Assembly: GCA_033442325.1 (NCBI GenBank)
Contig: JAWQFM010000034.1
Coordinates: forward strand, 1-64,000
Reading direction: 5' to 3'
Source: Salpingoeca rosetta
Taxonomy: Eukaryota > Protista > Choanoflagellata
DNA: 64,000 nt
Shown here in pieces: positions 3,280 through 18,881 of this stretch (position 1 is the first letter of the stretch; every line of letters begins with the position of its first letter). A program made the translations under genes and the position numbers. The notes under the pieces were generated by a model. The model was not told where the DNA came from and did no database searches. It saw nothing but the letters and a program-made list of their open reading frames with translations.

Positions 3280-5268
3280 GCGCATAGCTGCGTCGCTGTG
3301 GTTGGATGTGCCCACCATGACCATGGATGTGTGTGTCCACAGCTGCTCCTCCCAATTCATCATGTGTGCACCGCTCATTATCCTCCAACGATCCTCAGGC
3401 AGCCATCCCCTGCATACACACACACACATGACATGTGAGTTGCACAGCGACACTGCTACGAGATACAACAGCAGCGACAACACCAAGCACACCCAGAGCA
3501 GCAACAACAACACATGCACCGTGTGCCAACCAAAACATCCATGATGGGCTGACCTTGCTCACGCATATGGGAACACTGCATGAGCACAGCAACGGCAGCC
3601 GAATCGGGGTGGTTGCAGCTGCAGTATCCGGCATGCTAGCCCACTTCCATCAACATCCTGATGTGTGCTGGCACCTCACCACCTGTGCATGTGTGCATGT
3701 GCGTGGTTGCAGGGAACGTGGATGGGAATAGAACACAACAGGCACGGAGCAAGCCATTATGTCAGCAGAGCAGAACAAGGGATTGATATCACACGCACCA
3801 CGTGTGCGCGTATGTGTCGGTGTGTGTGTGCGTGCGTGTGTCGGTGTGCGTGATCATCATCCCCCATCAACCCCTCTTCCCTTGTTCGCTTTACCGCACC
3901 CCAGCACCGCCACCATCACAGCCCCATCACACAACCAACAACCGCTCATCACCACCCACATACCATGTGTGAGGCGAGTGTAGCTGGCACGCGTGGCAAG
4001 TATCCTCGACATTTCCCTCATCCTGTTGCCTGTGCGTGCGCATCGCCTGTAAGTGTGGTTGTGTGCGAGCACCAGCATGGTGAGTGAGTGGGAGGGAAGG
4101 CAGGGGGGCATGGATATGTGCGCAGCTACACTGCTGCCACTGCTGGTGTTGTGCATGTATGTGTGTGAAGAAGAAAGAGGAGAGAGAGAGAGGAAACAGA
4201 AAACAAAAGGGAAGGAACAAGACATGCTGCACCCCATCCATTCCATCCATCCCTCTTCCTCACACCACACCACCATGCTCTGTCATCAACCAGCCAGCCA
4301 CACCACACCGTACCACACCACACTCACTCAGCATCCCCCACCCCACCTTATCCCATCCATCCAGCCATCCAGCCAACACACATCTCCTCTCCCTTTCCCC
4401 TCTTCTTCTCGCCCTCACCTCTGCTTGCTGCTGCTTCCAGCCGAAAACGCAACTTGTGCCGTCGGCACCTGTTCCCAGCTGCAAACAAACAGCCAGCTTC
4501 CGCCAGCAGCAGCGGGCGATGGGTTGGTTGGGGGATGTGTTCAGCAGCAAGTGATGCTGGTGGTCACGTCCACCTCCTCCTGCACATCTCTGCTGCATCG
4601 GCGGTGGAGGGTGTGTTGGCTGCTGCTGCTGTTGTTGTTGTTGTGATGGCCGTCAGGGAGGGCGAGAAAGAGAGGGGAATATGAGCAGCGGCTGCAAGGT
4701 GGAGAATGTGCAGGTGTGCAAGCAGTTGTGTGTGTGAGAACGACGAATGAGACAGGCATCACGCAAGGCAAAACAGGCAGCCGCACGACACACATGCACA
4801 CATTGATGTGGGACAACAAGGGGAGACAGGAGCAACAGAGACAGCGACCACAAAACACGCACACTGGTGCTGTGCTCATCACACACACACGCACATGCAG
4901 TGACGCACTCACGTTGCTCATCGCTGGCTTGCTTGTGCTGTGGTGTATTGCTGGTGTTGCTGCTTCCGCAGCCGCACAGCGTGGCTGGATGATCATCGCA
5001 TGGCAGCGCCCGTCTGTTCATCCCACCAGAGCAGTGGTTATTGGTGGAGGGAGGGGTGACAGCTGCTGGCTCAAGGGCCCTCTGTGTGGCGACAGCAGAA
5101 AGTAGGAAGGGGAAACGAGCAAGTGTGGAGGGTGGTGGTGATAGTCGTGTTGAGGGTGGGAAGGGAAGGATGTGAGCAAACACACAAGCAAATGAGGAGG
5201 TGATGATGGCGTGTGGATGGGCGGAGAAGAGAACACGCACGTCAACACACACACAGACACACACCTAC

Positions 5269-5597
5269 CTGCCAGGCGTTGTCGCCGCTGAACAGGTTGA
5301 TCCTGGCAGACTCCAGCGCTGACAGTAGCAAATAGCACAGTCATAACACACGAGTTGGCAGATGGTGAGAGTGGTTGAACGGACACGAGAACACGTGAGC
5401 AACGCACACATCACACCATACTCCCCACACTCACTCGACAGCCCCCTGTCCCAACAACATACTCCCTCACCTGTGTGCACTTGGGTGGAGATGGACTTGA
5501 AGAACTCCTCAAACATAAACACAACGCGTCTCTGCATCATCTCCACCACCTCATCAGGGATCGACCGCAGGATCCTCGGAAGCTGAACACAGTTGTG

Positions 5598-5636
<39 letters not shown>

Positions 5637-6077
5637 CGTGACATGCAAGCCATCACAACCACAATCCCCATCAAAACACACCACCCCTCACGCATCGCTT
5701 GACATCCCCATGTCACCGACCTGTCACCACACCTCGAGGAGCCTGTGCTCGGGAATGCGGATGCTGAACGTCTCCCAGTCCAGCAGGTCCTGGTAGGGCT
5801 GCAAGAATGCAAAAAGCAAACGCCATCATATCACATCACAGCACCATGAGCGACGGGAGGGGTACATCCACACAGTGATGTGACACACAAGAAACACACA
5901 CACACACAATGTACAATCCATCCATACGCACCAGCACGTAGTGATCGACGACAATGACGGGGATGGTACCCGCAGCCATGATCTGAGACGTGAAGCGAGT
6001 GGCAGGAGGTGGAAGGTGGGTGATGAGCACGAACAGGACCGAAATCGTCTGCAACACACACGCACGCACACACGCAC

Positions 6078-6147
<70 letters not shown>

Positions 6148-7850
6148 CTGAAGGGGTGGTACCCAATTGCTTCCACGATGAGCCCAAACTTGGTCTCCAG
6201 CGCCAGATCCGTGTACGTGTACTTGTTGAGCTCTTCCTCTGCCTGCTTGCACGAGGGGTCATAGCCAACCTTCGCCCTCACGACCCATGCGCTCCTCGTC
6301 AAACCACCGGCACGCGCACACCAACACAATGTCCCTGCGCATACACAAGCAAACATACAAAGAGACGATGTATGTGTGTATGTGTGTGTGTGTGAGGTGG
6401 ATCCAGACAGACACGCACACAGCACCAAAACCAGTTGACTCCGAGGCAACGCACGAGACACACCCGGAACACGACAACACACAACATCACACACGCACCA
6501 CACCTACCGTTGTGAACTGTGGAGAGATGGTTGCGCATGGCATGAGAGCGAGCAGACTTGGTGGTGCCTCTGCACATCAGGGAAAGAAGACACATGTCAA
6601 GCAGCGGCACCCCGACAGGTTTGGAGTGAGGTTGCAGCAGCACAAGAAGGGCAAGCGGTGGTGCAGTGAGCGACACCGACCCCTCGAACCCCAGCAGCAG
6701 CAGTAGTGAACATCGTACCCCACATCGCACCACGTCACAACACACACGCATGCAAGCACACACCTGAAGGTGACGAGGTACTTCCTGTTTGTGCGGGCGG
6801 AACGCGTCGCTGCTCCGGTGTGAATGAATGAATGTCACAATGGAGAAGAGTGGCATGGACACATCGAGGCCGTCACGGTGGTGGAATTCACTCAGGCCAA
6901 CCTGATGCAGGTGGTGATGCGAAACAAGGCGGCATTGGTGAAGTGTAAGCAACAGCAGTCGTAGATGGTGAGCGCAGGCACACACAGTCATGTTCCAACA
7001 CACACACACGCACACATTGTACCTCTGCAAGAATGGGGTGTTCTGCATGCCAGGGAGACATGGTGTGTCACTGTACTCAAACAGGATGTGGTAGCGGCCC
7101 TCATTCCAATACGCAAGTCTGCCATGCATCACATGTATTGTTATGTGTGTTTGGAAGGCAGCCATGAACATAGGTTCTCTCGCACGCACGACATCAAGAT
7201 CCGCAAGCACACGAGCACCACAAGCAACAACAAACCACCACCTCAGCTGGAGAGATTGCGGTAGATGGCTGCGCTCACGGGATGCATCGACTCAATGCTG
7301 CCAGAGTACGTGCTGTGCATGCAATCTTTCAGCCGCAAGCGCGCACACACAGTTGTGAGGTGGTGGTGGTGGTGATGGTGACGGCTGTGGAAGCCCGTGC
7401 ATCTGCACCGACGCGACACACGCACAATCACAAACACACACACACTCACACACACACACACACACACCTTCACACCAGCACGACACGTCTGTGCCTGGAA
7501 CGAGGAGGCAAGCCTTGGACAGGTCATCGGTGCTGTACGGCCGTCAAGGATGGCGGTTCGGATGGCGCGGTCGATGGCTGGCAGGGGCGGCCTCTTCATC
7601 AGCAGTCAGACGGTACACGTACACCTGCCATAGATGCACGCACGCATGAACACGCAATCATAACACACACGCAGACAGAGAGTGTGAGGTCATCATGCTT
7701 CCGTTGCACTCCATGCCACGTCGTTGCTGTTGCTGTGTTGGTGGGTCTTCACCACCTTGAACGATGGGCGTGCGGCGATCCCTGACATCAGGGCCGTCAT
7801 TGGCAGTGCGATGGCGCAGCGGCATCTCGGTGCAGTGCGTTCTGGTAACA
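5269..7850 (-). pseudogene. Exostosin-like (EXT1-type GT47) glycosyltransferase, multi-exon, apparently frameshifted; ends approximate
   Basis: Exon pieces follow the EXT GT47 order: FKV|YVY...IDRAIRTAILDG/PYSTDDLSKACLLVP, WNEGRYHILFEYSD, DGLDVSMPLF, RKYLVTFR|G, RNHLSTVHNG|RDIVLVCAC, GYDPSCKQAEEELNKYTY, TKFGLIVEAIGYHPFR, IMAAGTIPVIVVDHYVL|PYQDLLDWETFSIRIPEHRLLE|LPRILRSIPDEVVEMMQRRVVFMFEEFFKSI. The homologous reading changes frame inside exons near 7535-7580, 6800-6830 and 6275. Confidence 0.75.
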
Positions 7851-8003
7851 GTGGTGGTTGTGGTGGAGACGATGGGTGCATTTGTTGTGTGATGAGGCGC
7901 GCGGATGAAAGGGGATGGGGGGAGTGTTGGGAGATATCTGCAACGAACCGCTGCACGCACGCACACACACACACACACACACATCACACACACACACACA
8001 CAC

Positions 8004-8166
8004 NNNNNNNNNNNNNNNNNNNNNNNNNNNNNNNNNNNNNNNNNNNNNNNNNNNNNNNNNNNNNNNNNNNNNNNNNNNNNNNNNNNNNNNNNNNNNNNNN
8101 NNNNNNNNNNNNNNNNNNNNNNNNNNNNNNNNNNNNNNNNNNNNNNNNNNNNNNNNNNNNNNNNNN
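8004..8166. other. Assembly gap (N run)
   Basis: Run of N. Confidence 1.
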
Positions 8167-10094
8167 AGCAGCAGCAACAACAACAACAGCAGCAGCAGGG
8201 AGCAGCGGGGGGATATTGATGATGATGACAATGACACATGCAATCCATCAATCAATCAATCAAGCAGACGAGCAAGCAGGCAAGCGAGCCAAACAAAGGA
8301 CATGTATTCATTCACTCCACGTGGACGAGCGACACGCCCACCACGTGGTGCGTGCGTGTGTGTTGTACTCACTGCTCTGCTTCCTTCACACTGTTCCTCT
8401 CTTCCTCGCAGTCCACTCTCCCTTTCTTTCTCTTGCACACCCCTTGCTTGACCTGCTCTCTGCACACCCTCTCTTCTCCACCCCCCCCCACTCACACGTC
8501 TCAAGTCACATGCCTCCCACCTCCCCCTTTGCTTTTGGCTGCAACGCTGCGCGTCTTCATCTCCACCTCCACCACCTGTTTTGCAGGCTGACGTTGAGGA
8601 TGATGATGGTGGCTTGAACAACAGTACCGTATCCTTGAGCGGGTGCCATCACCGTGTGCCACGGCAACAAGAGGCACTTCCTTCTCTCTCGCTCTGTCTC
8701 GGTATGTGCATGGCTGATGGCGTGGGGGGGGTGTTGCCTGGGATTTCCATTCGGCTGCACTGCACCTCAATGCGCTGTGTGACGCGACATGCACACCACA
8801 GCTTGCACTCCTCCTTCCCCCACTTATCCCCTCTGCAAGTCCTTGTCCTTGTCAACCGCGTCCCCTCGTCAATCACACCCCCCACACACACTCTCTCCTT
8901 TACCCCTGTCACGATGTGTGCTTGCTTCAGAGCAGGCCGCTGACATTGTCATCACCACTGTCAGACGGTGGTCGGTGCCATGCACGGGCATGGAGACAGT
9001 GAGCCAGCTCGTGGTCTCCAGCGTGGTGGCTGGAATGTGTGTTGAGGTGAAAGATCCCACCACCACACTTCCGCTTCCATATCACCATGGCTGACACCAC
9101 TAGCACTGCTGGTTGACACGCACCAGCAGACATCGCTCCCAGCGCCACACAAGATGTGTGTGTGTGTGTGTGTGATTGAATTCATTTGCACTCGTTGCTC
9201 CTCCCGCATGTCGAAACAACCACGCACACCGACCACCCCTCGTCAACACAACACCATTCAACATCCCCACTGGGCTGATGCAGGGCTGCACTGGCACGTC
9301 GTGCACGACAGCTTCTCATCGTCAGTTCTCCCTTCTCTCCTTTTTGGTCTTCACACAAGTCGCATCACCCCCGCCCAGCAGAGCGCCTGCATCTTACGCC
9401 CCACCCTCCCGTTGCACGCGTGCGCACACCGATTCCGACCCAGCGCAGGCTCTGCTGCTGCAGCCAACCACCCACACACATCGTCACCGCAACGCCGCTT
9501 CAACCAATCGCAGCCACTGACAGCCACCGGCATTGCACCTTTGCTGTGATTGAGTGCTGCCAGCACGTGGCCCCACCTCAACCTGCCACATCATCATCAC
9601 TATCCCCGACACTGCCATGTGTGTGTGTGCATGCATGCGTGTTCACACCATCGTTAACCACACCACATTGACACAGCAACAGCTGCACTGCTTGCTGTCC
9701 TGCGCGGCGTTGTGGCGGTGCACTCAAGGCCCTTTTGCCAGCCAGTTTCTCGCTGCTGCTAGCTGTACTTCTCCCTGCCCATCTCAATCACCTCAGCTTC
9801 AACCACAACTGCTGCTGTTTTCCGCCACCTCATCGTCTGCCAGCGAAGCATCACACCGCGGCCACAGCCGTCACTGCACGCTGCCGGTTTCAAGCAGCTC
9901 ACTGCGCTGGATGCTGTTGGCTCGTGGACCACCACACCGTGGTTGGAAGAGGGATTGGCCGTGATTGTGGCGGTTGTTGTGGTGGTGCTGCACGCAATGA
10001 CAACAACAGCGGCAGTTGATGAGGTGATGGTGTGCTTGCGCTCCTCACTGGTTGCAGCGGCAGCAAGGAGGTGGCCATCGTGTTTCTGGTTGGC

Positions 10095-10645
10095 ATGCAT
10101 GTGCTGGCCGACGTGGCGCAGGAGCGGTTCAGGGACTACGACAATGACTCTGTGCCGTTTATGAAGAACATTCTCCAACACGCAAACAACAGGCAATACC
10201 GCATGCTGCGCGGCCTGATGGGCGTGTCTGTTTGCAAGGACATGTTTGCGCCGGATGCACACGACTTCATGCGCATTATGCAAGCCAGCGCCGCCCAGAT
10301 TGAGGAGGATGATCCACAACCCTCATACATCCACACAAGGTGCGCTCAAGGCCAAGAGAGACAGAGAGAGAGAGAGAGAGTGTGTGTGTGTGTGTGTATG
10401 TGTGTGTGTGTGAGTGAACATGTGTGAACATGTCGCTTCGTCGTTTCCCTCCTTTCTCCACTTTCGGCTTGCCAAGCCTCACCGCCACCCCTTGTCGTCC
10501 TGCCGCGTTCAGGCTGTTGAGTCGCTGCTCGCTGTGATCCAGGGTGCCCGGCTCCCGCGAATCGCCCAACACCAGCGCGACCGAGAACTGCATCTCCGTC
10601 TTTGTCAAGATTGCACGCAACCGAGCACACGGCCTCTCAGAGGTG

Positions 10646-10700
<55 letters not shown>

Positions 10701-11513
10701 GTGCGTGCGTTGGTACACTCCTTCTTCGCCGTCCTTTTGCTTTGTTTGTTTGCTCTTGTCACTTTTTCGTCGCTTTTTCTTTACCTCCTCATCCACCCAT
10801 CCACCACCAACCCTTGCACAGCCGAGATGCTGACACATTTGCTTGACTGGCTGTCCATTACAGAAGACGACGATGAAGCAAAGTACATCTTCACATACCT
10901 CGTCGAGGTCCTCCAAGCGTGAGTGCTACCGCTGTACTTTGTGTGAGTGAGAGTGTGTGTGTGTGCATGGCCTGGTCGTGCTGCATGTGTCGGTGGTGTG
11001 CTCTGCCGCCTGTCGTTCTTGTTCCCGACTGACTCCCCCGTCCCCTCCTCATTGCTTCCTGTACCTCCCTCGCCTTCCTTTTGTTGTTGCTTCAGTCGGC
11101 AAGATCCCACGCGTGACCGCGCCTGAGAGCCCGGTGAAGATTGTGCGGGCGTTTGTTTGTGCAGATGATTGGCACCCCGGCGGCCGCCGTCGACGAGCCC
11201 CACTGCCAGGGCATGTACACAGCCTCATGGTGCGTGGGTTGTGTTGTGTGTGATTTATGTGATGTGTGTGTGTGTGTGTGTTTGCTGCCTCGAATATGCG
11301 CGACTGTCGTGTACTTCGTGTACTTTCCCATCCTCCTCCTCCTCCTCCTCCTTCCTCCTCTTTGCACTCCTCATTCTCACGCCCTCGTGTCGTTTCCTCT
11401 CGTAGAACATGCAGGATTCGCCTGCCCACGGGGTGGTGGGGCAGTTGATGCAGGATCCTGAGGTGCACGCCCGCGTGCAGCGCGCTGTTAAGGCGCTTGG
11501 CTCGTCCGCGTAG
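10095..11513 (+). pseudogene. Importin-5 (karyopherin beta-3)-like relic, internally deleted and frameshifted
   Basis: LADVAQERFRDYDNDSVPFMKNILQHANNRQYRMLRG-LMGVSVCKDMFAPDAHDFM...EEDDPQPSY resembles mid IPO5 but lacks the KTIECISL-equivalent segment. It then jumps to the C-terminal SATENCISVFVKI and LLDWLSITEDDDEAKYIFTYLVEVLQ. There is a 1-nt frameshift at ~10542 and no N-terminal half was found. Confidence 0.75.
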
Positions 11514-12452
11514 TCGCCATGTTGTGATGTGTCGTGTCAACTTGTGCACAAGTTGAACGAATGGCTGGATGTCTGTCGATTCCTCTGTCGCATTCCTCTT
11601 GTTGCTCTCTTCCCTTGTCTTCTTCTCTTCTCTTCTTGTTCTTCTCTTCTCTTCTGTTCTTCCCTTCCTTCACTCTCCTTCTCGCCTGCTTGCTTGCTTG
11701 CTTGCTTATGTCACGCCCTTCTTGTGCTTGCCTGTTCTTTTCATTGTATGGCGCTGTGTACGGCTGAACACGTTCTTGGTGTGGTTGGTGGATGTGTGCT
11801 GCTGCTGCTGCTGTGCGTATTTGATTCTGGCTTGTGACTGGAGGGTGTTGTTTGATGTGCAGAGGGGTTGGCTGTTGTTTGGTTGGCTTGGCTTCATGTT
11901 GCATTTGGGCACTGCTGTGTGTGTGGATGTGTGTTGAGGTGTTGAGAGCGTTGTTTGTGGGTTGTGTGGCGGACCTGTTCTTTCCTCAGTAAAATGGCTC
12001 GATGAAGATGATGAGACCCGCTTGACGGTGGTGATGGTGGAGCGGCGGTGATGTTTGTGGTTGATGTGGCTACAGACACTGGTGTGTTGTACCAACCAGG
12101 CAAGACCAAGCGAGGAGGGCGCGGCTGTTGTTCCTTTCGGCGACAAGAGAGTCGGGTTGTTGCTGGCTGGAGGCACTTCATCCTGTTTGTTTGTTGTGTT
12201 TCTGTCGACAACGAGGGCTCGAATGAGATTGTTGACGAACATCTTCCACGGAAGCGCTGCTGTGCGGATAACCTCTGTAAGGTTTTGCGAATCGTCCAGA
12301 TGGCTGAGTCGCAAAACACACACACACAAAACAAAGGAAACAAACAAAGCAGCGCGTTGAGTTGTCGTCGTCCATTTTGTCGTCGTCTTCTTCCAGTCAC
12401 TCACGAACACGTCACAACAAGCCACAAGGAGAAAAGACGACGCGCCGTCGCC

Positions 12453-15400
12453 ATGTCCGGCGGAGAGAAGAGAGCGAGGGAGGAGGTGGAGGCGTTGCTG
12501 GCGCAGACGAAGCTGAAGGATGGGGTGAAGGAAGAGATCAGGGCCATCGCCAACAACACGTGTGGGGACAATGTGGGGTGAGTGCAAAAGCAACCAAAAC
12601 GACGTGTTGGAACATGCATGCATGTGTTGGAGAGAAGGACACTTCTTGTGGTTGTGCTTATTCTCCCCTCTCTCTGCTGCTTGGCTTGTCCTTGTGTTGC
12701 AATGAGCTTGGTGTGGCTTGCTGTTGGGTGTTCACGTGTACGTGTCCTGTCCCCTCGCACCGCCTGGACACACTGTGTGTGTTTGTGTGTGTTTGTGGCA
12801 GGTTGTGACTGGCACCCTCATGTTTTTGCTCTCTTTATCCTCATTATTCTTGCTCATTTCATGACACACACCATTCATTTGTAATTACAGCTTGGTTGGT
12901 GCTGGCCTCGGCGACATTGAGGCGCGTGCAGTGGCTGAGGCGCTCAAGGACAACACTTGCCTCAAAGCACTCGAGTGCGTGGTTATGATGAATCTGCATC
13001 GTGTGACATGCATGGTTGATTGGGGTGGCGGTGTTGCATGTTGCACCCCTTTCTCCTCTCCTGCTGGCGCATGTTTGGACGTGTGTTCACCGTCGCTCCC
13101 TGCGGTTCTTGTGTGTCTGCACAGCCTGTGGGGCAACTCCATCGGTCCTGAGGGCGCTGTGGCGTTGGCGGAGATGTTGAAGCACAACACGACCCTCGAA
13201 AGACTCGAGTGCGTGTGTACACGCACACACGCACACACATGTATGCTGCGTCACTGCCGTTGCACCTTTATTACGTACACATGTGCCCATGTGTGGTTGA
13301 TGACTGTGTTGCCACCCACAGCAATCATCATCACGCACTCACTCTGACTTCCTCACTCACGTGGCATCATCGCCCTGCGTGACAATACACCAACTTGACA
13401 GCCTGTTTGGCAATGACATCGGCCCTGAGGGCGCCGTGGCGTTGGCGGAGATGCTGAAGCACAACACGACCCTCGAAAGACTCGAGTGCGTGTGTACACG
13501 CACACACGCACACACATGTATGCTGCGTCACTGCCGTTGCACCTTTATTACGTACACATGTGCCCATGTGTGGTTGATGACTGTGTTGCCACCCACAGCA
13601 ATCATCATCACGCACTCACTCTGACTTCCTCACTCACGTGGCATCATCGCCCTGCGTGACAATACACCAACTTGACAGCCTGTTTGGCAATGACATCGGC
13701 CCTGAGGGCGCTGCAGCGTTGGCGGAGATGCTGAAGCACAACACGGCCCTCAAACAACTCTAGTGAGTGTGTACACGCACACATGCACACATGTATGCTG
13801 CGTCACTGCCGTTGCACCGTATCACGTGCACATGTGTGGCTGGTGGGGTGGGGTTCAACGACTGTGTTGCCACCCACAGCAATCATCATGCTCTTCCTCA
13901 CCCATGTGGCATCATCCCCCTGTGTGGCATCATACCATCTTGACAGCCTGGGAGGCAACCGCATCGGTCCTGAGGGCGCCGTGGCGTTGGCGGAGATGCT
14001 GAAGCACAACACGACCATGACATTGCTCGCGTGAGTGTGGACACGCACACACACACATGTATGCTGCGTCACTGCCGTTGCACCTTATCATGCGCACATG
14101 TGTGGTTGATGACTGTGTTGCCACCCACAACAATCATCATCACTCACTCACTCACTCTTCCTCACCCATGTGGCATCATCCCCCTGTGTGGCATCCACCA
14201 TACCGTCTTGACAGCCTGTACAACAACCGCATCGGCCCTGAGGGCGCCGTGGCGTTGGCGGAGATGCTGAAGCACAACACGACCCTCGAAAGACTCGAGT
14301 GCGTGTGTACACGCACACACGCACACACATGTATGCTGCGTCACTGCCGTTGCACCTTTATTACGTACACATGTGCCCATGTGTGGTTGATGACTGTGTT
14401 GCCACCCACAGCAATCATCATCACGCACTCACTCTGACTTCCTCACTCACGTGGCATCATCGCCCTGCGTGACAATACACCAACTTGACAGCCTGTTTGG
14501 CAATGACATCGGCCCTGAGGGCGCTGTGGCGTTGGCGGAGATGCTGAAGCACAACACGACCATGACAGGGCTGGGGTGAGTGTGTACACGCACACATGCA
14601 CATGTATGCTGCGTCACTGCCTGTTGCACCTTTATCATGTGCACGTGTGTGGTGGAGTGGGTTCAACGACTGTGTTTCCACCCGCAGCGATCATCCCGCA
14701 CGCACCCTTCCTCACTCATATGGCATCATGGCCCTGTGTGGCTTCATACCATCTTGACAGCCTGAGCAACAATTCAATCGGCGATGAGGGCGCTGTGGCG
14801 TTGGCGGAGATGCTGAAGCACAACACGGCCCTCAAAAGACTCTAGTGAGTGTGTACATGCACACACACATGTATGCTGCGTCACTGCCGCTGCACCTTAT
14901 CACGTGCACATGTGTGGTTGATGACTGTGTTGCCACCCACAACAATCATCATCACGCACTCACTCACTCTTCCTCACCCATGTGGCATCATCCCCCTGTG
15001 TGGCATTATACCATCTTGACAGCCTGTACAACAACCGCATCGGCCCTGAGGGCGCCGTGGCGTTGGCGGAGATGCTGAAGCACAACACGACCCTCGAACG
15101 ACTCGGGTGAGTGTGTACACGCACACACACACATGTATGCTGCGTCACTGTCGTTGCACCTTATCATGTGCACATGTGTGGTGTGGTGGGGTGGGGTGCA
15201 ACGACTGTGTTGCCACCCACAACGATCATCATCACGCTCTTCCTCACTCACGTGGCATCATCGCCCTGCGTGGCATCATACCGTCTTGACAGCCTGGGGG
15301 CCAACTCCATCGGCCCAAGGGGCGCCGCGGCGTTGGCGGAGATGCTGAAGCACAATACGACCATGACATCACTCTTGTGAGTGTGTCCACGCACACGTGC

Positions 15401-18400
15401 ACATGTAGATGGAAATGGGCTGCGTTGCTGCCGTGCTGTCACTGCCGCCGCTCAAACCAGTTGCAAGCAAGCAGGGCGTATTCCTGCCTGCAACAGTGAC
15501 CCGCTTCGTTCCTGTTGCCAACTCACCTGTTTCTCCATCTCATCCAACAGCATTTCCCACAATGGTATCACGGAGCGTGGCATGGTGAACGTGCTGAAGC
15601 AGCTGCAACACATTGACGCCAAGGCCAAGATTCTGTGAGTTTCGTGTGCTTGCGACCTTGCTCCACCCACATGCACCGAATCAATTTCAGTTCAAGTTCT
15701 TTCATCTCACATTCCCTCTTCACGGCATCACAGGCTGTTTGAGGACAAGCTCAAATCCTCCACTGCCGTTGCCCGTGCACTGGCCACGCTCCGCACCAAG
15801 CGGCCACACCTCCACGTCGTCTACAGCCTGTGAGTTCATACAGAGTGCTGCGTCAGGCGTGCTCTTGTTAAAACCACCCGTCTCATCCCCATCTTCTTGC
15901 CTCCGTTCACGCTGCATTATTCTTCTCCTCAGGTACGACGGAACAGAGGACGACTTCAGCCCTGCCGCCAAGGCCGCCTACCAAGACCAGCTCGATCTTC
16001 TCAGGCTGCTAGAAACAGGCTCCGTTCCTCTGGAGACAGCAAAAGTGTTCGTGTGCGGCCATGGTGGCATTGGCAAGACGACCATGATCGAGTCGCTCCC
16101 AGGTGCTGATGAGGCCAGCGGCTACCTTTCCCGATTCCTGTCATCTTGGTTCGGGCAGCCACGTCACGATCCAGAACAGCCTGGTGCGCGCACACCCGGC
16201 ATTCGGGTCTGTGAAATGAAGCTCAAAGACTCCAGCCGTGCCAATGATGAAGCCGCCTCTCTCCGCGTGTACGATTTTGGCGGGCAGCTCGCATATCACG
16301 TGATCCACACGCTGATGATGTCGGATCGCTTCGCTGCGTTTGTCGTCTGCGTCGACCTGTCTGAGCCGGAAGAACATGTGAAGGAGCGCGCCAACTACTG
16401 GCTGCAGTTCATCTGCACACGACTGAAGCAGGGCATGGCAGCCGCGACAGCAACGGCAGACGGGGATGCCATGGAAGAGATGAGGCCGCGTGTGCTCATT
16501 GTGGGCACCAAGAGGGATCTTGCTCGCAAGAAGAGACTTGTGGATGAACATGGCCAGCCACCGTGGGGTGCAGCGATGGTCGCACACTTGAAGACCACGT
16601 ATGGCAGCATCGTTGACATCCAAGACAGCCTCATCTCCCTCAACTGTCATCAGGGTGGTGAAGCCGGGTTTGATGTGCTCCGGTCACGCCTTGTGCGACA
16701 CTGGCGATGGCTGAGAGGGCGTGAGCTTCTCGTCCCCAGAGTTGTGGATCTACTTGCCACAACCCTTCGACCAGCCAGGGAGGAGAAACGAGTGTGGGCC
16801 ATCGATGCGCTCTTTCAGTTAACCCTATCCCGCGCACCTGGACTCGATTTGACATCCTTCGACATGGCCATGTTTTCGTCTGCCTTAAGGTACTCTGTCA
16901 TCAAGACTTCGCAGATCTGTCATCCGTGGTGTGTAATCAGCTAACTGACTTGAGTACCAGTGCAAGAATTCTCACCCCTCCTCCGTTGCTACCTATGCTT
17001 CCCACACATGTACACAGGTACCTCCACACGCGCGGCGATCTGCTCTGGTACTCCAACAACTCCACCTTACAGGATTTCGTCTTTGTTGACCCGAACTGGC
17101 TGTTACATGACGTGTTGGGGAGAGCGCTGACGCCGGATGGCGTGCAGCAAGGCTCGATCACAAAGAAAGGGGTCGTGACATTCACGGACCTGGAGACCGC
17201 ATTCCGAGGCATCGCCGACGCAGATCTCGTCATCAACGTGCTGCAGCACACGCTCCTCTGCTTCGAGCTGCTGCCTTCAGACGATGGCCAACGGCGATTC
17301 ATGCTGCCGAGCCGCGTTGAGAAGAAGGTCGATCTCGCAACCGCCTGGCCTCAAGCTGGTTTCTGGCCTCTCTATGCCGGACGACTGCTGGTGGTCGAGA
17401 GCAAGGCACTTGCGCTGCCACCTGGCTTCTTCCCGCACGTGCAGACGCTGTTGCACAGGTCTTTTGGCGCAACGCTGAAGGTGTGGCCAGACGCCTTTTT
17501 CTGTGAACACGATGCTGTGCAGTGCCTTGGACTACTGCGGGGCGATCGAGAAGTCGACGTCTGGGTGCGGGCACCTTCTGGCGCAGAGCACAAGGCCCTG
17601 CCATTCATGACACAGGTCGGTTTGTGAGCGATTATGAGTGCTTGTGGGCATGTGTGTTGTGTGTGTGAGCTTGCGTTGTTGTGCCCATCGCTTGTCAGCA
17701 GATGATCAGCTTCCATCTTTCACCCTCATCCCATCCTCTGCTCACTTGCGTGTTGATGGCAGGTGCTGTCTGTGCTACAAGGGGAAGCAAGAGGGATTGA
17801 CCACGTCCACCTTGTTCTCAGCACGAAACGCCTGAAGTGCCACGAGCAGTACCCAGCCGCTCACAAGCTCGAGGATCTGACGGACAAGGGCCCAGACGAG
17901 CTCGTCACGTCCACGCACCACAGGGAAGGCCAGACCCCAGTGTCCGACCGCGTTGGCGATCTGTTGCTGCAGGCGCCCACGCAACCACCACCCATCATGC
18001 CGTCTTGGCAATTGCGCGACCACGAATGGCACCACCCTGCTTGGCGGCTTGATGACACCTTTGATGAGCAGCTCCCGTGGAGCGGACCGAGCTCGCATGG
18101 CGTGTATTCGGCACCCTTGCCACCAAACACCGACCTCTATCGATGGATAGAGAGCCAGATGACGCCGGGCCTCACCCTGTCGCGCGTGGAGATGACCAAG
18201 TCCACCACGATGCTGCGGGCGTTTCAGACGCAAGTGGAGCGGTCAGCGACGCGTCGTGGTGATCCAGACCCTGCAAATCCCTTCAACAAGGACTTTGGAC
18301 TTGGTGATCCAGAGAAGAAAGCCATGCTTCATCGGCTCAGGACGCTGTTTGCAAAAACACGCACCGGCTTGAAGCACGTCAACGTGCTCATCGGTTTCCA

Positions 18401-18881
18401 CGGGTGTGCAGAAGATGTCGCTGACAGCATCACCGCGTGTGGGGCAGCGAACTTCAGCAGCCCGGGCGACCGTGGCTTCTTCGGATCTGGCATCTACCTC
18501 ACACCGCAGACAAGCTATGCCGCAGGGTACTCCACGCGTGTTTTGTTGAATGGTGATTTGCGCTCACCAAACTCAAATGACGAGCACGTGATGCTCCTGT
18601 GCGCTGCCAGCGTTGGCCTGGCATACCCGATCACCCGGGCCGCAGATTACCCCCATGGCTCGAATGAATGCTCCTACTATGGGAAGCCTTTTGATGAAAG
18701 CCAAGACACCCACTATGCGCAGGTGACACGCGCCACCAACTTACAGGCCACGCCCACACCTGGCACGTTTGCCTTTGAGGAGTACGTCGTTTCGCAAGAG
18801 GCGCAGGTCCTCCCATTTGCCAAGGTGTTCGTGAAGGTGGACATGGACGCCTATTTGTCGCACTTGTCAACCCTGCCATGA
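12453..18881 (+). CDS. ROCO-family protein: 11 RI-type LRRs - Roc GTPase - COR - PARP-like ADP-ribosyltransferase domain (~1272 aa, 16 exons)
   Basis: Exons: 12453-12577; eleven 84-nt exons starting 12891, 13125, 13402, 13679, 13947, 14215, 14492, 14761, 15023, 15293, 15551; 15734-15829; 15933-16889; 17018-17615; 17763-18881. All introns are GT-AG and the total of 3819 nt is in frame. Roc motifs: GHGGIGKTT, TPGI, YDFGGQLAYHVIH, IVGTKRD. COR-like: LRYLHTRGDLLWY...FVFVDPNWL. ART motifs: IGFHG, GFFGSGIYLT, MLLC, EEYVVSQEAQVLP. Confidence 0.9.
13125..15376 (+). repeat. Tandem array of ~262-277-bp exon+intron units (9 near-identical 84-nt LRR exons)
   Basis: Core GGCGCYGYRGCGTTGGCGGAGATGYTGAAGCACAAYACG recurs 9 times. 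Introns 13209-13401, 13486-13678 and 14299-14491 look identical by eye (193 nt each). Confidence 0.95.

Follow-up and report, generated by a model that had tools for sequence, protein, structure and literature searches.

A transcribed LRR-Roc-COR-PARP-like gene of Salpingoeca rosetta with a tandem array of 84-nt single-LRR exons and a family of paralogs near contig ends

Introduction

In the lamprey VLR system, receptors are assembled somatically by copy choice from an incomplete germline gene and flanking donor cassettes that are not spliced. Brown-algal (Ectocarpus, Saccharina) LRR-ROC-COR genes carry exon-shuffled LRRs, with 24-residue LRRs in 72-bp exons (Zambounis et al. 2012, PMC3341825; Teng et al. 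2024, PMC11378527). In human NOD/NLRC genes, each exon encodes one 28-aa RI-type LRR, and NLRP genes use 171-bp exons of two LRRs (Hoss et al. 2019, PMC6642158). The one-LRR-per-exon arrangement as such is therefore already precedented, in the brown-algal ROCO genes and in the human NOD/NLRC genes.

Here we describe a gene of the choanoflagellate Salpingoeca rosetta, located in a window of 64,000 nucleotides (the whole stretch of DNA analysed, at the start of its contig). New here are the repetition of a 277-nt exon+intron unit, a multi-array family near contig ends, identical introns shared between chromosomes, and an excess of pN over pS at the variable (x) codons of the repeat.

Gene structure

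The gene lies at 12453-18881 on the + strand and comprises 16 exons with canonical splice sites and an intact open reading frame of 1272 aa; it is transcribed, and its protein order is LRR-Roc-COR-PARP-like. The features of the locus are the following:

4750..12400, no strand assigned: upstream block common to other chromosome ends (subtelomeric duplicated region), found by blastn
12453..12577, + strand: exon 1, start codon and 41-residue N-terminal peptide, phase 2 end, intact ORF in the gene model
12891..12974, + strand: LRR exon 1, N-terminal cap type (LVGAGLGDIEARAVAEALKDNTCLKAL); every paralogous array opens with this cap type
13125..15376, + strand: nine core 84-nt LRR exons starting at 13125, 13402, 13679, 13947, 14215, 14492, 14761, 15023 and 15293, with introns of 178-193 nt
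13178..13434, + strand: first of three copies of a perfect identity tract, the others at 13455-13711 and 14268-14524
15551..15634, + strand: LRR exon 11, C-terminal cap type (ISHNGITERGMVNVLKQLQHIDAKAKI), a cap also present in the paralogs on contigs C27 and C28 and in PTSG_13043
15734..15829, + strand: linker exon of 96 nt, in the phase of the LRR exons (RNA-read splices and gene model)
15933..16889, + strand: Roc GTPase exon (Pfam Roc PF08477), with P-loop GHGGIGKT, DFGGQ and TKRD in its translation
17018..17615, + strand: probable COR exon (Pfam COR-A PF16095)
17763..18881, + strand: C-terminal exon, PARP-like ADP-ribosyltransferase domain (Pfam PARP PF00644) and stop codon

The Roc domain is identified by its profile score (E 4.9e-8, 33.7 bits against a cut-off of 27) together with the G1, G3 and G4 motifs. 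The COR-A match lies marginally under its cut-off (E 1.8e-8, 34.9 bits against 35.3), in the position expected for it, directly after Roc, and the paralogs score much alike. The PARP match is likewise just under the cut-off (E 1.2e-5, 25.4 bits against 26.7); relatives carry PF00644, and the translation contains FHG, GIYL and FEEYVV, candidate motifs of an H-Y-E type NAD+ site. No signal peptide is apparent, judged by eye, in the peptide of exon 1. The product looks like a cytosolic protein in which the LRR would serve as sensor, the Roc-COR GTPase as switch and the ADP-ribosyltransferase-like domain as effector; this signalling logic is inferred, and by analogy the protein may have an immune or other recognition role.

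The first-pass annotation had reported 11 consecutive 84-nt exons in one phase, each starting with C, and an open-phase scan for 84 nt bounded by AG and GT recovered exactly these. All lie on the + strand:

12891-12974, 13125-13208, 13402-13485, 13679-13762, 13947-14030 and 14215-14298 (first six)
14492-14575, 14761-14844, 15023-15106, 15293-15376 and 15551-15634 (last five)

Each of the 11 consists of 1 base, 27 codons and 2 bases, which gives phase 2 introns and symmetrical exons throughout (11/11), and encodes one 28-residue ribonuclease-inhibitor-type LRR. It is true by construction that any subset can be removed in frame without a stop, since the junction codon NN+C is never a stop codon. 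The LRR class follows from the 28-29-residue pattern LxxLxLxxNxIgxxGaxxLaxxLxxNxx and from Pfam LRR_6; single exons match LRR_6 with E values of 8.6e-5 and 6e-4, just below the whole-protein cut-off because one exon carries only part of one repeat, and the paralog PTSG_13043 reaches 63 bits. In the PDB, single exons match LRRC34, NOD2 (5irm) and RI-like proteins. The intron splits the beta-strand (LxxL-x/LxxN), and each exon thus starts midway through one strand, continues through the helix and stops halfway along the following strand; in the AlphaFold model of PTSG_13043, the junction residue is in mid-strand and strand and helix recur every 28 residues.

The array is a tandem repeat of a 277-nt exon+intron unit (8.4 copies, 81%, Tandem Repeats Finder) and not a product of chance. 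Every identity tract extends from the middle of one exon across a 193-nt intron into the middle of the next; between copies 2 and 3 the identity spans 297 nt (13417-13713 and 14230-14526), and introns 13209-13401, 13486-13678 and 14299-14491 are mutually 100% identical. Because of these very recent intron-centred duplications, three of the nine core strands are the same (TLERL-D-LFGND). The residue strings earlier listed for the binding face (D-WGNS, D-FGND three times, Y-GGNR, A-YNNR, G-SNNS, Y-YNNR, G-GANS) and the tails ER/KQ/TL/TG/KR/TS are all correct, but with three of nine strands identical this gene alone is less diverse than the list suggests.

Family and chromosome-end location

The genome holds at least 106-131 copies of the 277-nt unit, distributed over about 17 arrays. 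A first look gave 131 exon candidates and 69 intron matches, and 106 same-phase, C-initial 84-nt exons were collected from 17 arrays, their uniform form following from how the scan was built. The number of core repeats varies from 1 to 9 per array, the present gene having the most. Exon 1 has at least 23 copies elsewhere (at least 70% identity), and there are 12 close Roc paralogs. Most of the collected arrays share the N-terminal exon and the LRR cassette type and then have another cap exon, an exon weakly resembling ankyrin and, at 6-10 kb downstream, a Roc exon; in the window gene and the genes on C27 and C28, the LRR cap is followed directly by Roc-COR, with the PARP-like domain at the end. 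Exon decay is visible in several arrays, and the Roc exon of some paralogs is interrupted by in-frame stops. Orphan donor cassettes, which the first-pass annotation had envisaged, did not turn up in the genome-wide search: each cassette found sits within a paralogous array having its own first exon.

Twenty of the 23 family genes have a contig end at a distance of 12-75 kb and are directed away from it: those at contig starts lie on the + strand, those at contig ends on the - strand. Of the other three copies of the N-terminal exon, one is interior and two are on contigs of unknown length. When window positions 1-30000 were compared by blastn with the fetched paralog loci, the 7.6-kb upstream block matched the end-side flank of arrays on six of the nine contigs for which that flank had been fetched, mainly C13, C26, C27, C28 and C29, plus C14 over 10.5-12.4 kb. 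Most family members thus lie near ends, within common and co-oriented duplicated blocks. Since TTAGGG is not assembled at the start of the window's contig, the basis for the term subtelomeric is that the genes are consistently oriented, that they lie beside shared blocks and that fosmids were mapped in published work. Shared subtelomeric repeats have been reported in S. rosetta, with fosmid mapping supporting telomeric ends (PMC4054682). One caveat to the location is that assembly effects also enrich contig ends near repeats.

We consider it probable that this is a germline-encoded cytosolic LRR-Roc-COR-PARP-like gene, one of at least 23 chromosome-end paralogs, whose arrays evolve by recombination and selection. 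To hypothesize, 277-nt exon+intron units would be duplicated in tandem and lost through unequal crossover or gene conversion, with identity tracts that start and stop within the middle part of the exon, which is conserved and codes for the helix; sequence would also pass between arrays located at different chromosome ends. Homogenisation, recent duplication and purifying selection may keep the helix and the framework alike, and selection may keep or drive apart seven beta-strand and loop codons. Reading frame and solenoid geometry would survive each such event because every exon is 84 nt long, in phase 2 and C-initial.

Transcription and splicing

In two stranded RNA-seq runs, RNA depth is strand-specific and confined to exons, peaking at exon 1, partly via cross-mapping of paralogs. 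Six adjacent GT..AG junctions were seen (13762>13947, 14575>14761, 14844>15023, 15376>15551, 15634>15734 and 15829>15933), and a 538-nt spliced contig covers the last three of them. Joints were reported above a threshold of 2%. All exons appear to be spliced constitutively.

The main alternative is a repertoire of exon-skipping isoforms, in which one gene would, through alternative or stochastic skipping, yield LRR domains of varied length and surface, possibly in addition to the germline process. Symmetrical cassettes permit it by their phase, precedents exist in Ectocarpus ROCO genes (PMC11378527) and human NLRP3 (PMC6642158), and identical exon ends hide some skipping events from 101-nt reads. 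However, all GT..AG joints among the best 15 of 23 join neighbouring exons, which is a weak test given two runs of 101-nt reads, low depth and repeated exons. The non-adjacent joints are cross-mapped reads, because their inserted letters match beta-strands of paralogs, and the backward joint 14844>14215 was rejected as a real splice, being explained by the 98% identity of exons 6 and 9. We regard skipping as an unlikely source of the diversity, and recombination and selection among germline arrays as the better account.

Selection on binding-face codons

The claim that variation is concentrated at the x positions of the beta-strand and loop holds over 70 core exons from 15 arrays, where codons 2, 3, 5, 8, 25 and 26 have an amino-acid entropy of 1.2-3.5 bits and the remaining codons at most 0.9 bits, and the junction codon takes 10 residue types. 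Nei-Gojobori counting on the same set, with bootstrap over arrays, gave pN 0.51 and pS 0.28 for the seven x codons (JC dN/dS 2.5), against a dN/dS of 0.19 for the helix. The resulting pN/pS of 1.85 (bootstrap 1.55-2.17; never at or below 1) is a simple count, not the estimate of a codon site model, and the pairs of recombining 84-nt sequences behind it are not independent; read as such, it bears out the nonsynonymous excess anticipated in the first-pass annotation and points to diversifying selection at concave-face positions of an exon-modular array.

When exons were paired, x sites differed by about 50% where introns differed by less than 6%. The synonymous sites beside the x codons are diverse too, at 0.25-0.27 for pairs with less than 4% difference in the adjoining 60 nt of intron and 0.39-0.43 at higher intron divergence, so the excess of x-site change over introns may partly reflect intron homogenisation or the shuffling of old variants rather than new mutations. 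Helices differ between repeats in the older paralog PTSG_13043; the invariance of the helix in the present array therefore reflects recency or homogenisation and not only protein constraint.

Solvent-exposed positions tolerate substitution in any LRR protein, and the LRRs of Roco and NLR proteins also act in autoinhibition. It could thus be argued that concerted evolution and relaxed constraint suffice and that the LRR, a scaffold or autoinhibitory lid with drifting exposed residues, has no recognition role; the decayed exons and the Roc-exon stops are consistent with weak constraint on part of the family. We find this quite improbable, as drift cannot raise nonsynonymous above synonymous change, nor lift x-site change about five-fold above intron divergence, and homogenisation that keeps introns 86% alike would erase the x-site differences as well unless opposed by selection. 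Germline recombination together with diversifying selection fits the data.

Sequence exchange between arrays

Introns that are 100% identical occur on different contigs (C32 and C36, C13 and C35), one pair has an identical intron and head and a different tail, and the nearest relative of an intron lies within its own array in only 14 of 52 cases. Typical intron divergence is 5-15% (intron pi 0.14), and most exchanges are therefore old. The earlier proposal of diversification by recombination and/or exon skipping is thus partly supported: recombination at the DNA level is evident from the 1-9 repeats per array, the intron-centred tracts and the introns identical across contigs, and skipping finds no support in the RNA reads, a weak test. 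The diversification that can be seen is evolutionary, probably through birth-and-death in the germline with unequal crossover and gene conversion, and not a demonstrated combinatorial system inside a cell.

Slow evolution in the germline might not be all that lies behind the position near ends, the shared orientation and the perfect tracts from mid-exon to mid-exon, which occur on one chromosome as well as between chromosomes. In a more speculative proposal, which we hold to be a long shot, frequent mitotic ectopic conversion among the subtelomeric LRR arrays would act as a contingency system, by which clonal lineages would differ in their cytosolic receptor repertoire. If true, the unicellular organisms most closely related to animals would have a mechanism of receptor diversification based on recombination.

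Mitotic recombination, programmed or of high frequency, in which ectopic conversion between arrays at chromosome ends rewrites the expressed LRR domain in clonal lineages, as in antigenic-variation families or, loosely, lamprey VLR, would draw on the same location, orientation and tracts and on the mosaic structure, and somatic recombination was raised as a hypothesis for the algal analogue (PMC3341825). We judge it very improbable: there is neither an incomplete germline gene nor a spliceless donor cassette, each array belongs to an apparently complete paralog, bulk RNA shows many paralogs co-expressed, and the intron divergence dates most exchanges as old. No signs of somatic or programmed rearrangement were seen at the gene, which is complete, spliced and open in the germline.

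The exact repeat number is read from a gapped Sanger/454 assembly with perfect identities of 257-297 nt, and although such repeats, an N gap close by (about 7.9-8.2 kb) and the breaking of short DNA contigs from public runs within the array would suit an artefact in which the three identical 277-nt units were over-expanded or collapsed, making copy number and order in the window unreliable, this is hardly credible, because the same unit structure recurs in varying numbers in the arrays of paralogs on 14 other contigs, several unique junctions are confirmed by RNA reads and a Sanger read, at about 700 nt, is long enough to cover over two units. Only the exact length is at issue; there is no question that the array exists. 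The reading that we prefer remains germline recombination with selection.

Comparison with known systems

Lamprey VLR genes resemble this family in that receptor diversity is built from LRR cassettes, with conserved framework sequence used there for homology-guided copying. Unlike them, the S. rosetta gene is complete and spliced in the germline and its cassettes are ordinary exons of paralogs; VLR-like somatic assembly was accordingly rejected, the germline ORF of 1272 aa being intact and all cassettes lying in arrays with their own first exon.

Plant NLR / R-gene clusters are also a multigene family with hypervariable solvent-exposed xxLxLxx residues under diversifying selection, exchange of sequence between paralogs and birth-and-death evolution (partly PMC3341825), but their LRRs are of another class and mostly in large exons, and the switch is NB-ARC.

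Human NOD/NLRC genes share the LRR class, the 28-residue-per-exon module, the exon border inside the beta-strand and the frame-preserving exons, and a single exon of the window aligns to NOD2 repeats (5irm). However, their switch is a NACHT ATPase where S. rosetta has a Roc-COR GTPase, and the arrays in animals are of old origin, their introns have diverged, and they do not form subtelomeric multi-copy units. Skipping of exon 5 was demonstrated in human NLRP3 (PMC6642158), whereas none is shown in S. rosetta.

The brown-algal ROCO genes differ in several respects: S. rosetta belongs to an unrelated lineage (Holozoa), its exons are 84 nt long and encode 28-residue ribonuclease-inhibitor-type LRRs, its introns are duplicated and conserved together with the exons, it has the C-terminal PARP-like domain and the near-end clustering, and the alternative splicing reported in Ectocarpus is not seen in its RNA reads. 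Both nevertheless have the LRR-Roc-COR order, one LRR per symmetrical phase-2 exon, repeat numbers that vary among paralogs and positively selected concave-face sites, and the algal genes have been proposed as immune receptors.

Structure of the LRR exon array and its gene

A mechanical scan of positions 12500-16100 for AG, 84 nt and GT with an open phase recovered exactly the eleven exons listed in the first-pass annotation, all 84 nt long, of one phase and C-initial; they are read as one base, 27 codons and two bases, and all their flanking introns are phase 2. Every residue string quoted in that annotation was reproduced in the spliced translation, and its claim that exons can be lost or gained in frame and without a stop also holds, because the junction codon is always NN+C, so that the skipping, duplication or deletion of a whole exon gives neither a stop nor a frameshift. 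In Tandem Repeats Finder the array comes out as 8.4 copies (81%) of one exon-intron unit of 277 nt. The introns within the array measure 174-193 nt, GT..AG in all. The first and the eleventh exon are diverged "cap" repeats with 31-62% identity to the others, and identity among the nine core exons is 75-98%.

Joining the canonical splice sites gives 16 exons at 12453-18881 and an ORF of 3819 nt encoding 1272 aa, with the following parts.

Features of the gene at 12453-18881, plus strand
N-terminal exon: 41 residues (gene model)
Eleven LRR exons: single exons match Pfam LRR_6 (ribonuclease-inhibitor class)
Linker exon: 96 nt (gene model)
Roc exon: Pfam PF08477, over the cut-off
COR exon: PF16095, E 1.8e-8, 0.4 bits below the cut-off
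Last exon, PARP-like domain: PF00644, E 1.2e-5, slightly below the cut-off

The PARP-like domain (18360-18800) carries the motifs FHG, GIYL and FEEYVV, which resemble the H-Y-E NAD+ site, with a Pfam score slightly below the cut-off. Among the solved structures compared, the best alignments of single LRR exons were with LRRC34, NOD2 (5irm) and RI-like chains. The LRR domain was represented by an AlphaFold model (pLDDT 79.6) of the paralog PTSG_13043, residues 1-265, which shows one strand/helix unit per 28 residues with the junction-codon residue in the middle of each strand, meaning that the intron splits the beta-strand. In this model, each strand is composed of codons 25-26 of one exon, the junction codon and codons 2, 3 and 5 of the next exon, and codon 8 lies in the strand-to-helix loop.

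The closest database proteins are all hypothetical proteins of Salpingoeca rosetta (PTSG_13043, PTSG_09169, PTSG_11448 and others). The family is narrow, since a search of 1.8 billion proteins with the Roc exon gave only seven representative clusters below E 1e-30, and it is restricted to S. rosetta and close relatives.

Gene family and chromosome-end location

Against the whole assembly, a one-exon query gave 131 first-look candidates, 40 of which were scored, and the 193-nt intron gave 69 matches of 74-100% identity. The family analysis is based on merged paralog pieces of 3-16 kb, which cover the downstream architecture of most paralogs in part; from the fetched pieces 106 exons of the same form (84 nt, same phase, C-initial) were gathered in 17 arrays. 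Each array starts with the same cap type, followed by 1-9 core repeats, with the maximum in the window's gene. There are at least 23 copies of the N-terminal exon (identity at least 70%) and 12 close copies of the Roc exon. In the six-frame match, four close Roc-exon paralogs are each interrupted by one in-frame stop, TGA or TAG (contigs of the searched assembly being written G000:Cn or Cn: G000:C33:61920, C2:35453, C24:1204265 and C20:1228860); pseudogenes, intron positions and sequencing errors are all candidate explanations.

For twenty of 23 family genes the distance to a contig end is 12-75 kb, far more than chance would give, since about 18% of the genome is that near an end. Those at contig starts are always on the plus strand and those at contig ends on the minus strand, so that transcription leads away from the end. 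Of the other three genes, one (C9) is interior, and two sit on contigs whose length is unknown. Upstream of the window's gene, the 7.6 kb at 4750-12400 has homology to the flank that faces the contig end in the arrays of six of the nine contigs with a fetched flank, mainly C13, C26, C27, C28 and C29, and C14 in part; it is a shared subtelomeric block. An assembly gap lies within the block (N run at about 7900-8200, X in ORF translations), with GT/CA microsatellites on either side. The S. rosetta genome paper reports repeated subtelomeric regions common to most telomeric supercontig ends (PMC4054682, Table S3), and no description of their genes was found in the parts read. A telomere call at the window start by means of TTAGGG was dropped, since the search found none in the assembled start of the contig; the repeat is assembled at only a few contig ends. 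TTAGGG arrays were seen at G000:C12:1,380,104-1,380,211 and C1:2,745,611-2,745,652, either at or inside the contig ends.

Two architectures are built on the array. In the window's gene and in the C27 and C28 genes, the core repeats are followed by the cap ISHNGITERG... and by Roc-COR-PARP. In most other arrays, there follow an intron of about 350 nt, a different cap (L.NNSITPVGGAALGAALDQNRTL), a further repeat and an exon that is weakly ankyrin-like (E 0.019 at one locus, no match at another); paralog loci L019 and L067 are among those with the alternative cap. On C32 and C13, a Roc exon lies 6-10 kb downstream of such arrays (G000:C32:31355, C13:1700993). It seems that the same N-terminal exon and LRR cassettes serve both PARP-type and TIR-type receptor architectures.

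Copying of exon-intron units

Three 193-nt introns of the window are identical, and they lie in perfect tracts of 257 nt (13178-13434 = 13455-13711 = 14268-14524) and 297 nt (13417-13713 = 14230-14526). The tracts start 31 or 69 nt ahead of the intron and stop 33-35 nt past it, in both flanking exons within the conserved stretch that encodes the helix; because they run from one helix-coding part to the next, the copied unit is a whole beta-strand with its intron, and the copied strand TLERL-D-LFGNDIGPEGA is present three times in the window's array.

Across the family, 52 core introns have a mean pairwise identity of 86% (pi 0.14), and 100% identical introns occur on different contigs (C32/C36, C13/C35). 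In one identical-intron pair the downstream head is common and the upstream tail different, which places the breakpoint at the exon-intron boundary. The nearest relative is within the same array for only 14 of the 52 introns, against a random expectation of 4.3, so intragenic duplication and inter-array relationships both contribute. Some arrays also hold decayed, frame-shifted remnants of 84-nt exons within enlarged introns, and there is one in-frame variant exon of 81 nt (merged loci on G000:C14, ~1,681.6 kb; C15, ~13.9-14.2 kb; and C26, ~1,052.4 kb); such sequences represent birth-and-death evolution at the level of the exon. The C13 array (G000:C13:1,711,000-1,715,300; loci L005, L027, L028, L051, L052, L059 and L060) has an internal repeat with a spacing of about 2.75 kb, its intron matches recurring at 1,711,175 and 1,713,926 and at 1,711,443 and 1,714,194, and this is either a larger segmental duplication in one array or two adjacent genes.

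Variation and selection at the binding face

Site variation was analyzed in 70 core exons from 15 arrays. The variation claimed in the first-pass annotation for the x positions of the binding face is borne out: codons 2, 3 and 26 reach an amino-acid entropy of 2.9-3.5 bits and codons 5, 8 and 25 one of 1.2-1.5 bits, the junction codon takes 10 residue types, and all remaining codons have at most 0.9 bits. The comparison of dN/dS across exon copies that it proposed points the same way. Nei-Gojobori counting with a bootstrap over arrays, used in place of a codon likelihood model, gave pN 0.51 and pS 0.28 for the seven x codons (Jukes-Cantor dN/dS 2.5), with dN/dS of 0.19 for helix codons and 0.41 for other framework codons. 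The pN/pS of the x codons was 1.85 (1.55-2.17) and never fell to 1 or below, with the caveat that the pairs are non-independent and the sequences recombining.

Where the introns of two units are less than 6% apart, the x sites are already about 50% different, and helix sites are about 4% different at any intron distance. Diversity is also seen at the few synonymous sites next to the x codons (0.25-0.27 where the neighbouring 60 nt of intron diverge by less than 4%, 0.39-0.43 at higher intron divergence), so the contrast between x sites and introns may partly be due to homogenisation of introns or shuffling of old variants. In the older paralog PTSG_13043, helices vary between repeats; the near-invariance of the helix in the window's subfamily is therefore due to recent shared ancestry or homogenisation in addition to protein constraint. 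No DNA-level element is claimed for the helix-coding part, as a seven-fold synonymous deficit against introns, obtained from third positions only, fell to about 2.5-fold with site counting (pS ~0.055 for codons 12-22 versus intron pi 0.14), which is too small for such a claim.

Expression and splicing

In two stranded RNA-seq runs, depth is on exons only and first mates fall on the minus strand, so the RNA is transcribed from the plus strand. GT..AG junctions were found at 13762>13947, 14575>14761, 14844>15023, 15376>15551, 15634>15734 and 15829>15933, and a 538-nt contig from another run is spliced through exons 10-11-12-13.

Apparent skips of 219-1295 nt in the read alignments were rejected as isoforms, as those with a listed joint sequence hold 5-26 extra letters that spell beta-strands of paralogs (TW-L-S-LERN, LSENS). 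Other joints that skip or go back were rejected as isoforms or back-splices because their ends are not GT..AG or the exons joined are 98% identical, as with exons 6 and 9 in 14844>14215. Evidently, several paralogs are co-expressed. At 12404-12570 (exon 1 and 5' UTR), RNA depth is 3-10 times that of the rest of the gene; loose ends occur there together with several high-frequency "variants" (12446 C>T, 12533-12534 AG>CA and loss of 1 nt at 12432), and reads of co-expressed paralogs whose first exons are almost the same are the simplest explanation.

Interpretation

The reading with the best support is a germline family of cytosolic Roco proteins that look like sensors, with LRR domains that would evolve via unequal crossover and gene conversion of exon-plus-intron units, exchanged both inside arrays and between chromosome ends, with selection maintaining the diversity of binding-face residues. 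Exons of this design (84 nt, phase 2, C-initial, border within the strand) keep each such event safe for both frame and fold, and they also make every new junction a hybrid strand.

The first-pass annotation had proposed combinatorial receptor diversification by exon skipping and/or recombination, and recombination among germline arrays is the part that fits. Regulated skipping of LRR exons is possible but unsupported: no GT..AG skip is among the 15 best-supported joints of the two stranded runs (ahead of eight weaker ones), which is weak evidence against it as the reads are only 101 nt. Somatic or programmed rearrangement of the arrays has no support, and the defining features of VLR-type assembly are absent.

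Among living organisms, choanoflagellates are the closest relatives of animals, and to our knowledge little is known about how they recognize microbes or viruses. The locus shows that S. rosetta expresses a large family of cytosolic sensor-switch-effector genes, which sits at chromosome ends and has population-genetic hallmarks of immune-receptor repertoires, namely copy-number variation, exchange between paralogs and an excess of amino-acid change at the binding face. Because CRISPR works in S. rosetta, the family is a tractable test system for pre-animal innate immunity.

Comparison with known systems

A literature text search for Salpingoeca and ROCO together gave only one paper, with a passing mention, and a search for 84-bp exons of NOD2 gave no paper. 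What is new is the exon-cassette ROCO combination in a choanoflagellate, the introns conserved and duplicated together with the exons, the outputs of the family (PARP-like or TIR domains), and a co-oriented family near chromosome ends with inter-chromosome exchange.

The closest precedent is the LRR-ROC-COR family of brown algae, whose 72-bp phase-2 exons hold a single LRR apiece and for which exon shuffling, alternative splicing and positively selected concave-face sites are reported (PMC3341825, PMC11378527); beside it, the S. rosetta family is a second, independent case of exon-cassette ROCO receptor evolution. The exon module itself is that of human NOD/NLRC genes, in which each exon encodes one 28-residue RI-type LRR with its border in the beta-sheet (Hoss et al. 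2019, PMC6642158); in S. rosetta, arrays built alike are attached to a Roc-COR GTPase with a PARP-like or TIR output, and they offer a way to ask if the module of one exon per LRR in animal NLRs is older than animals.
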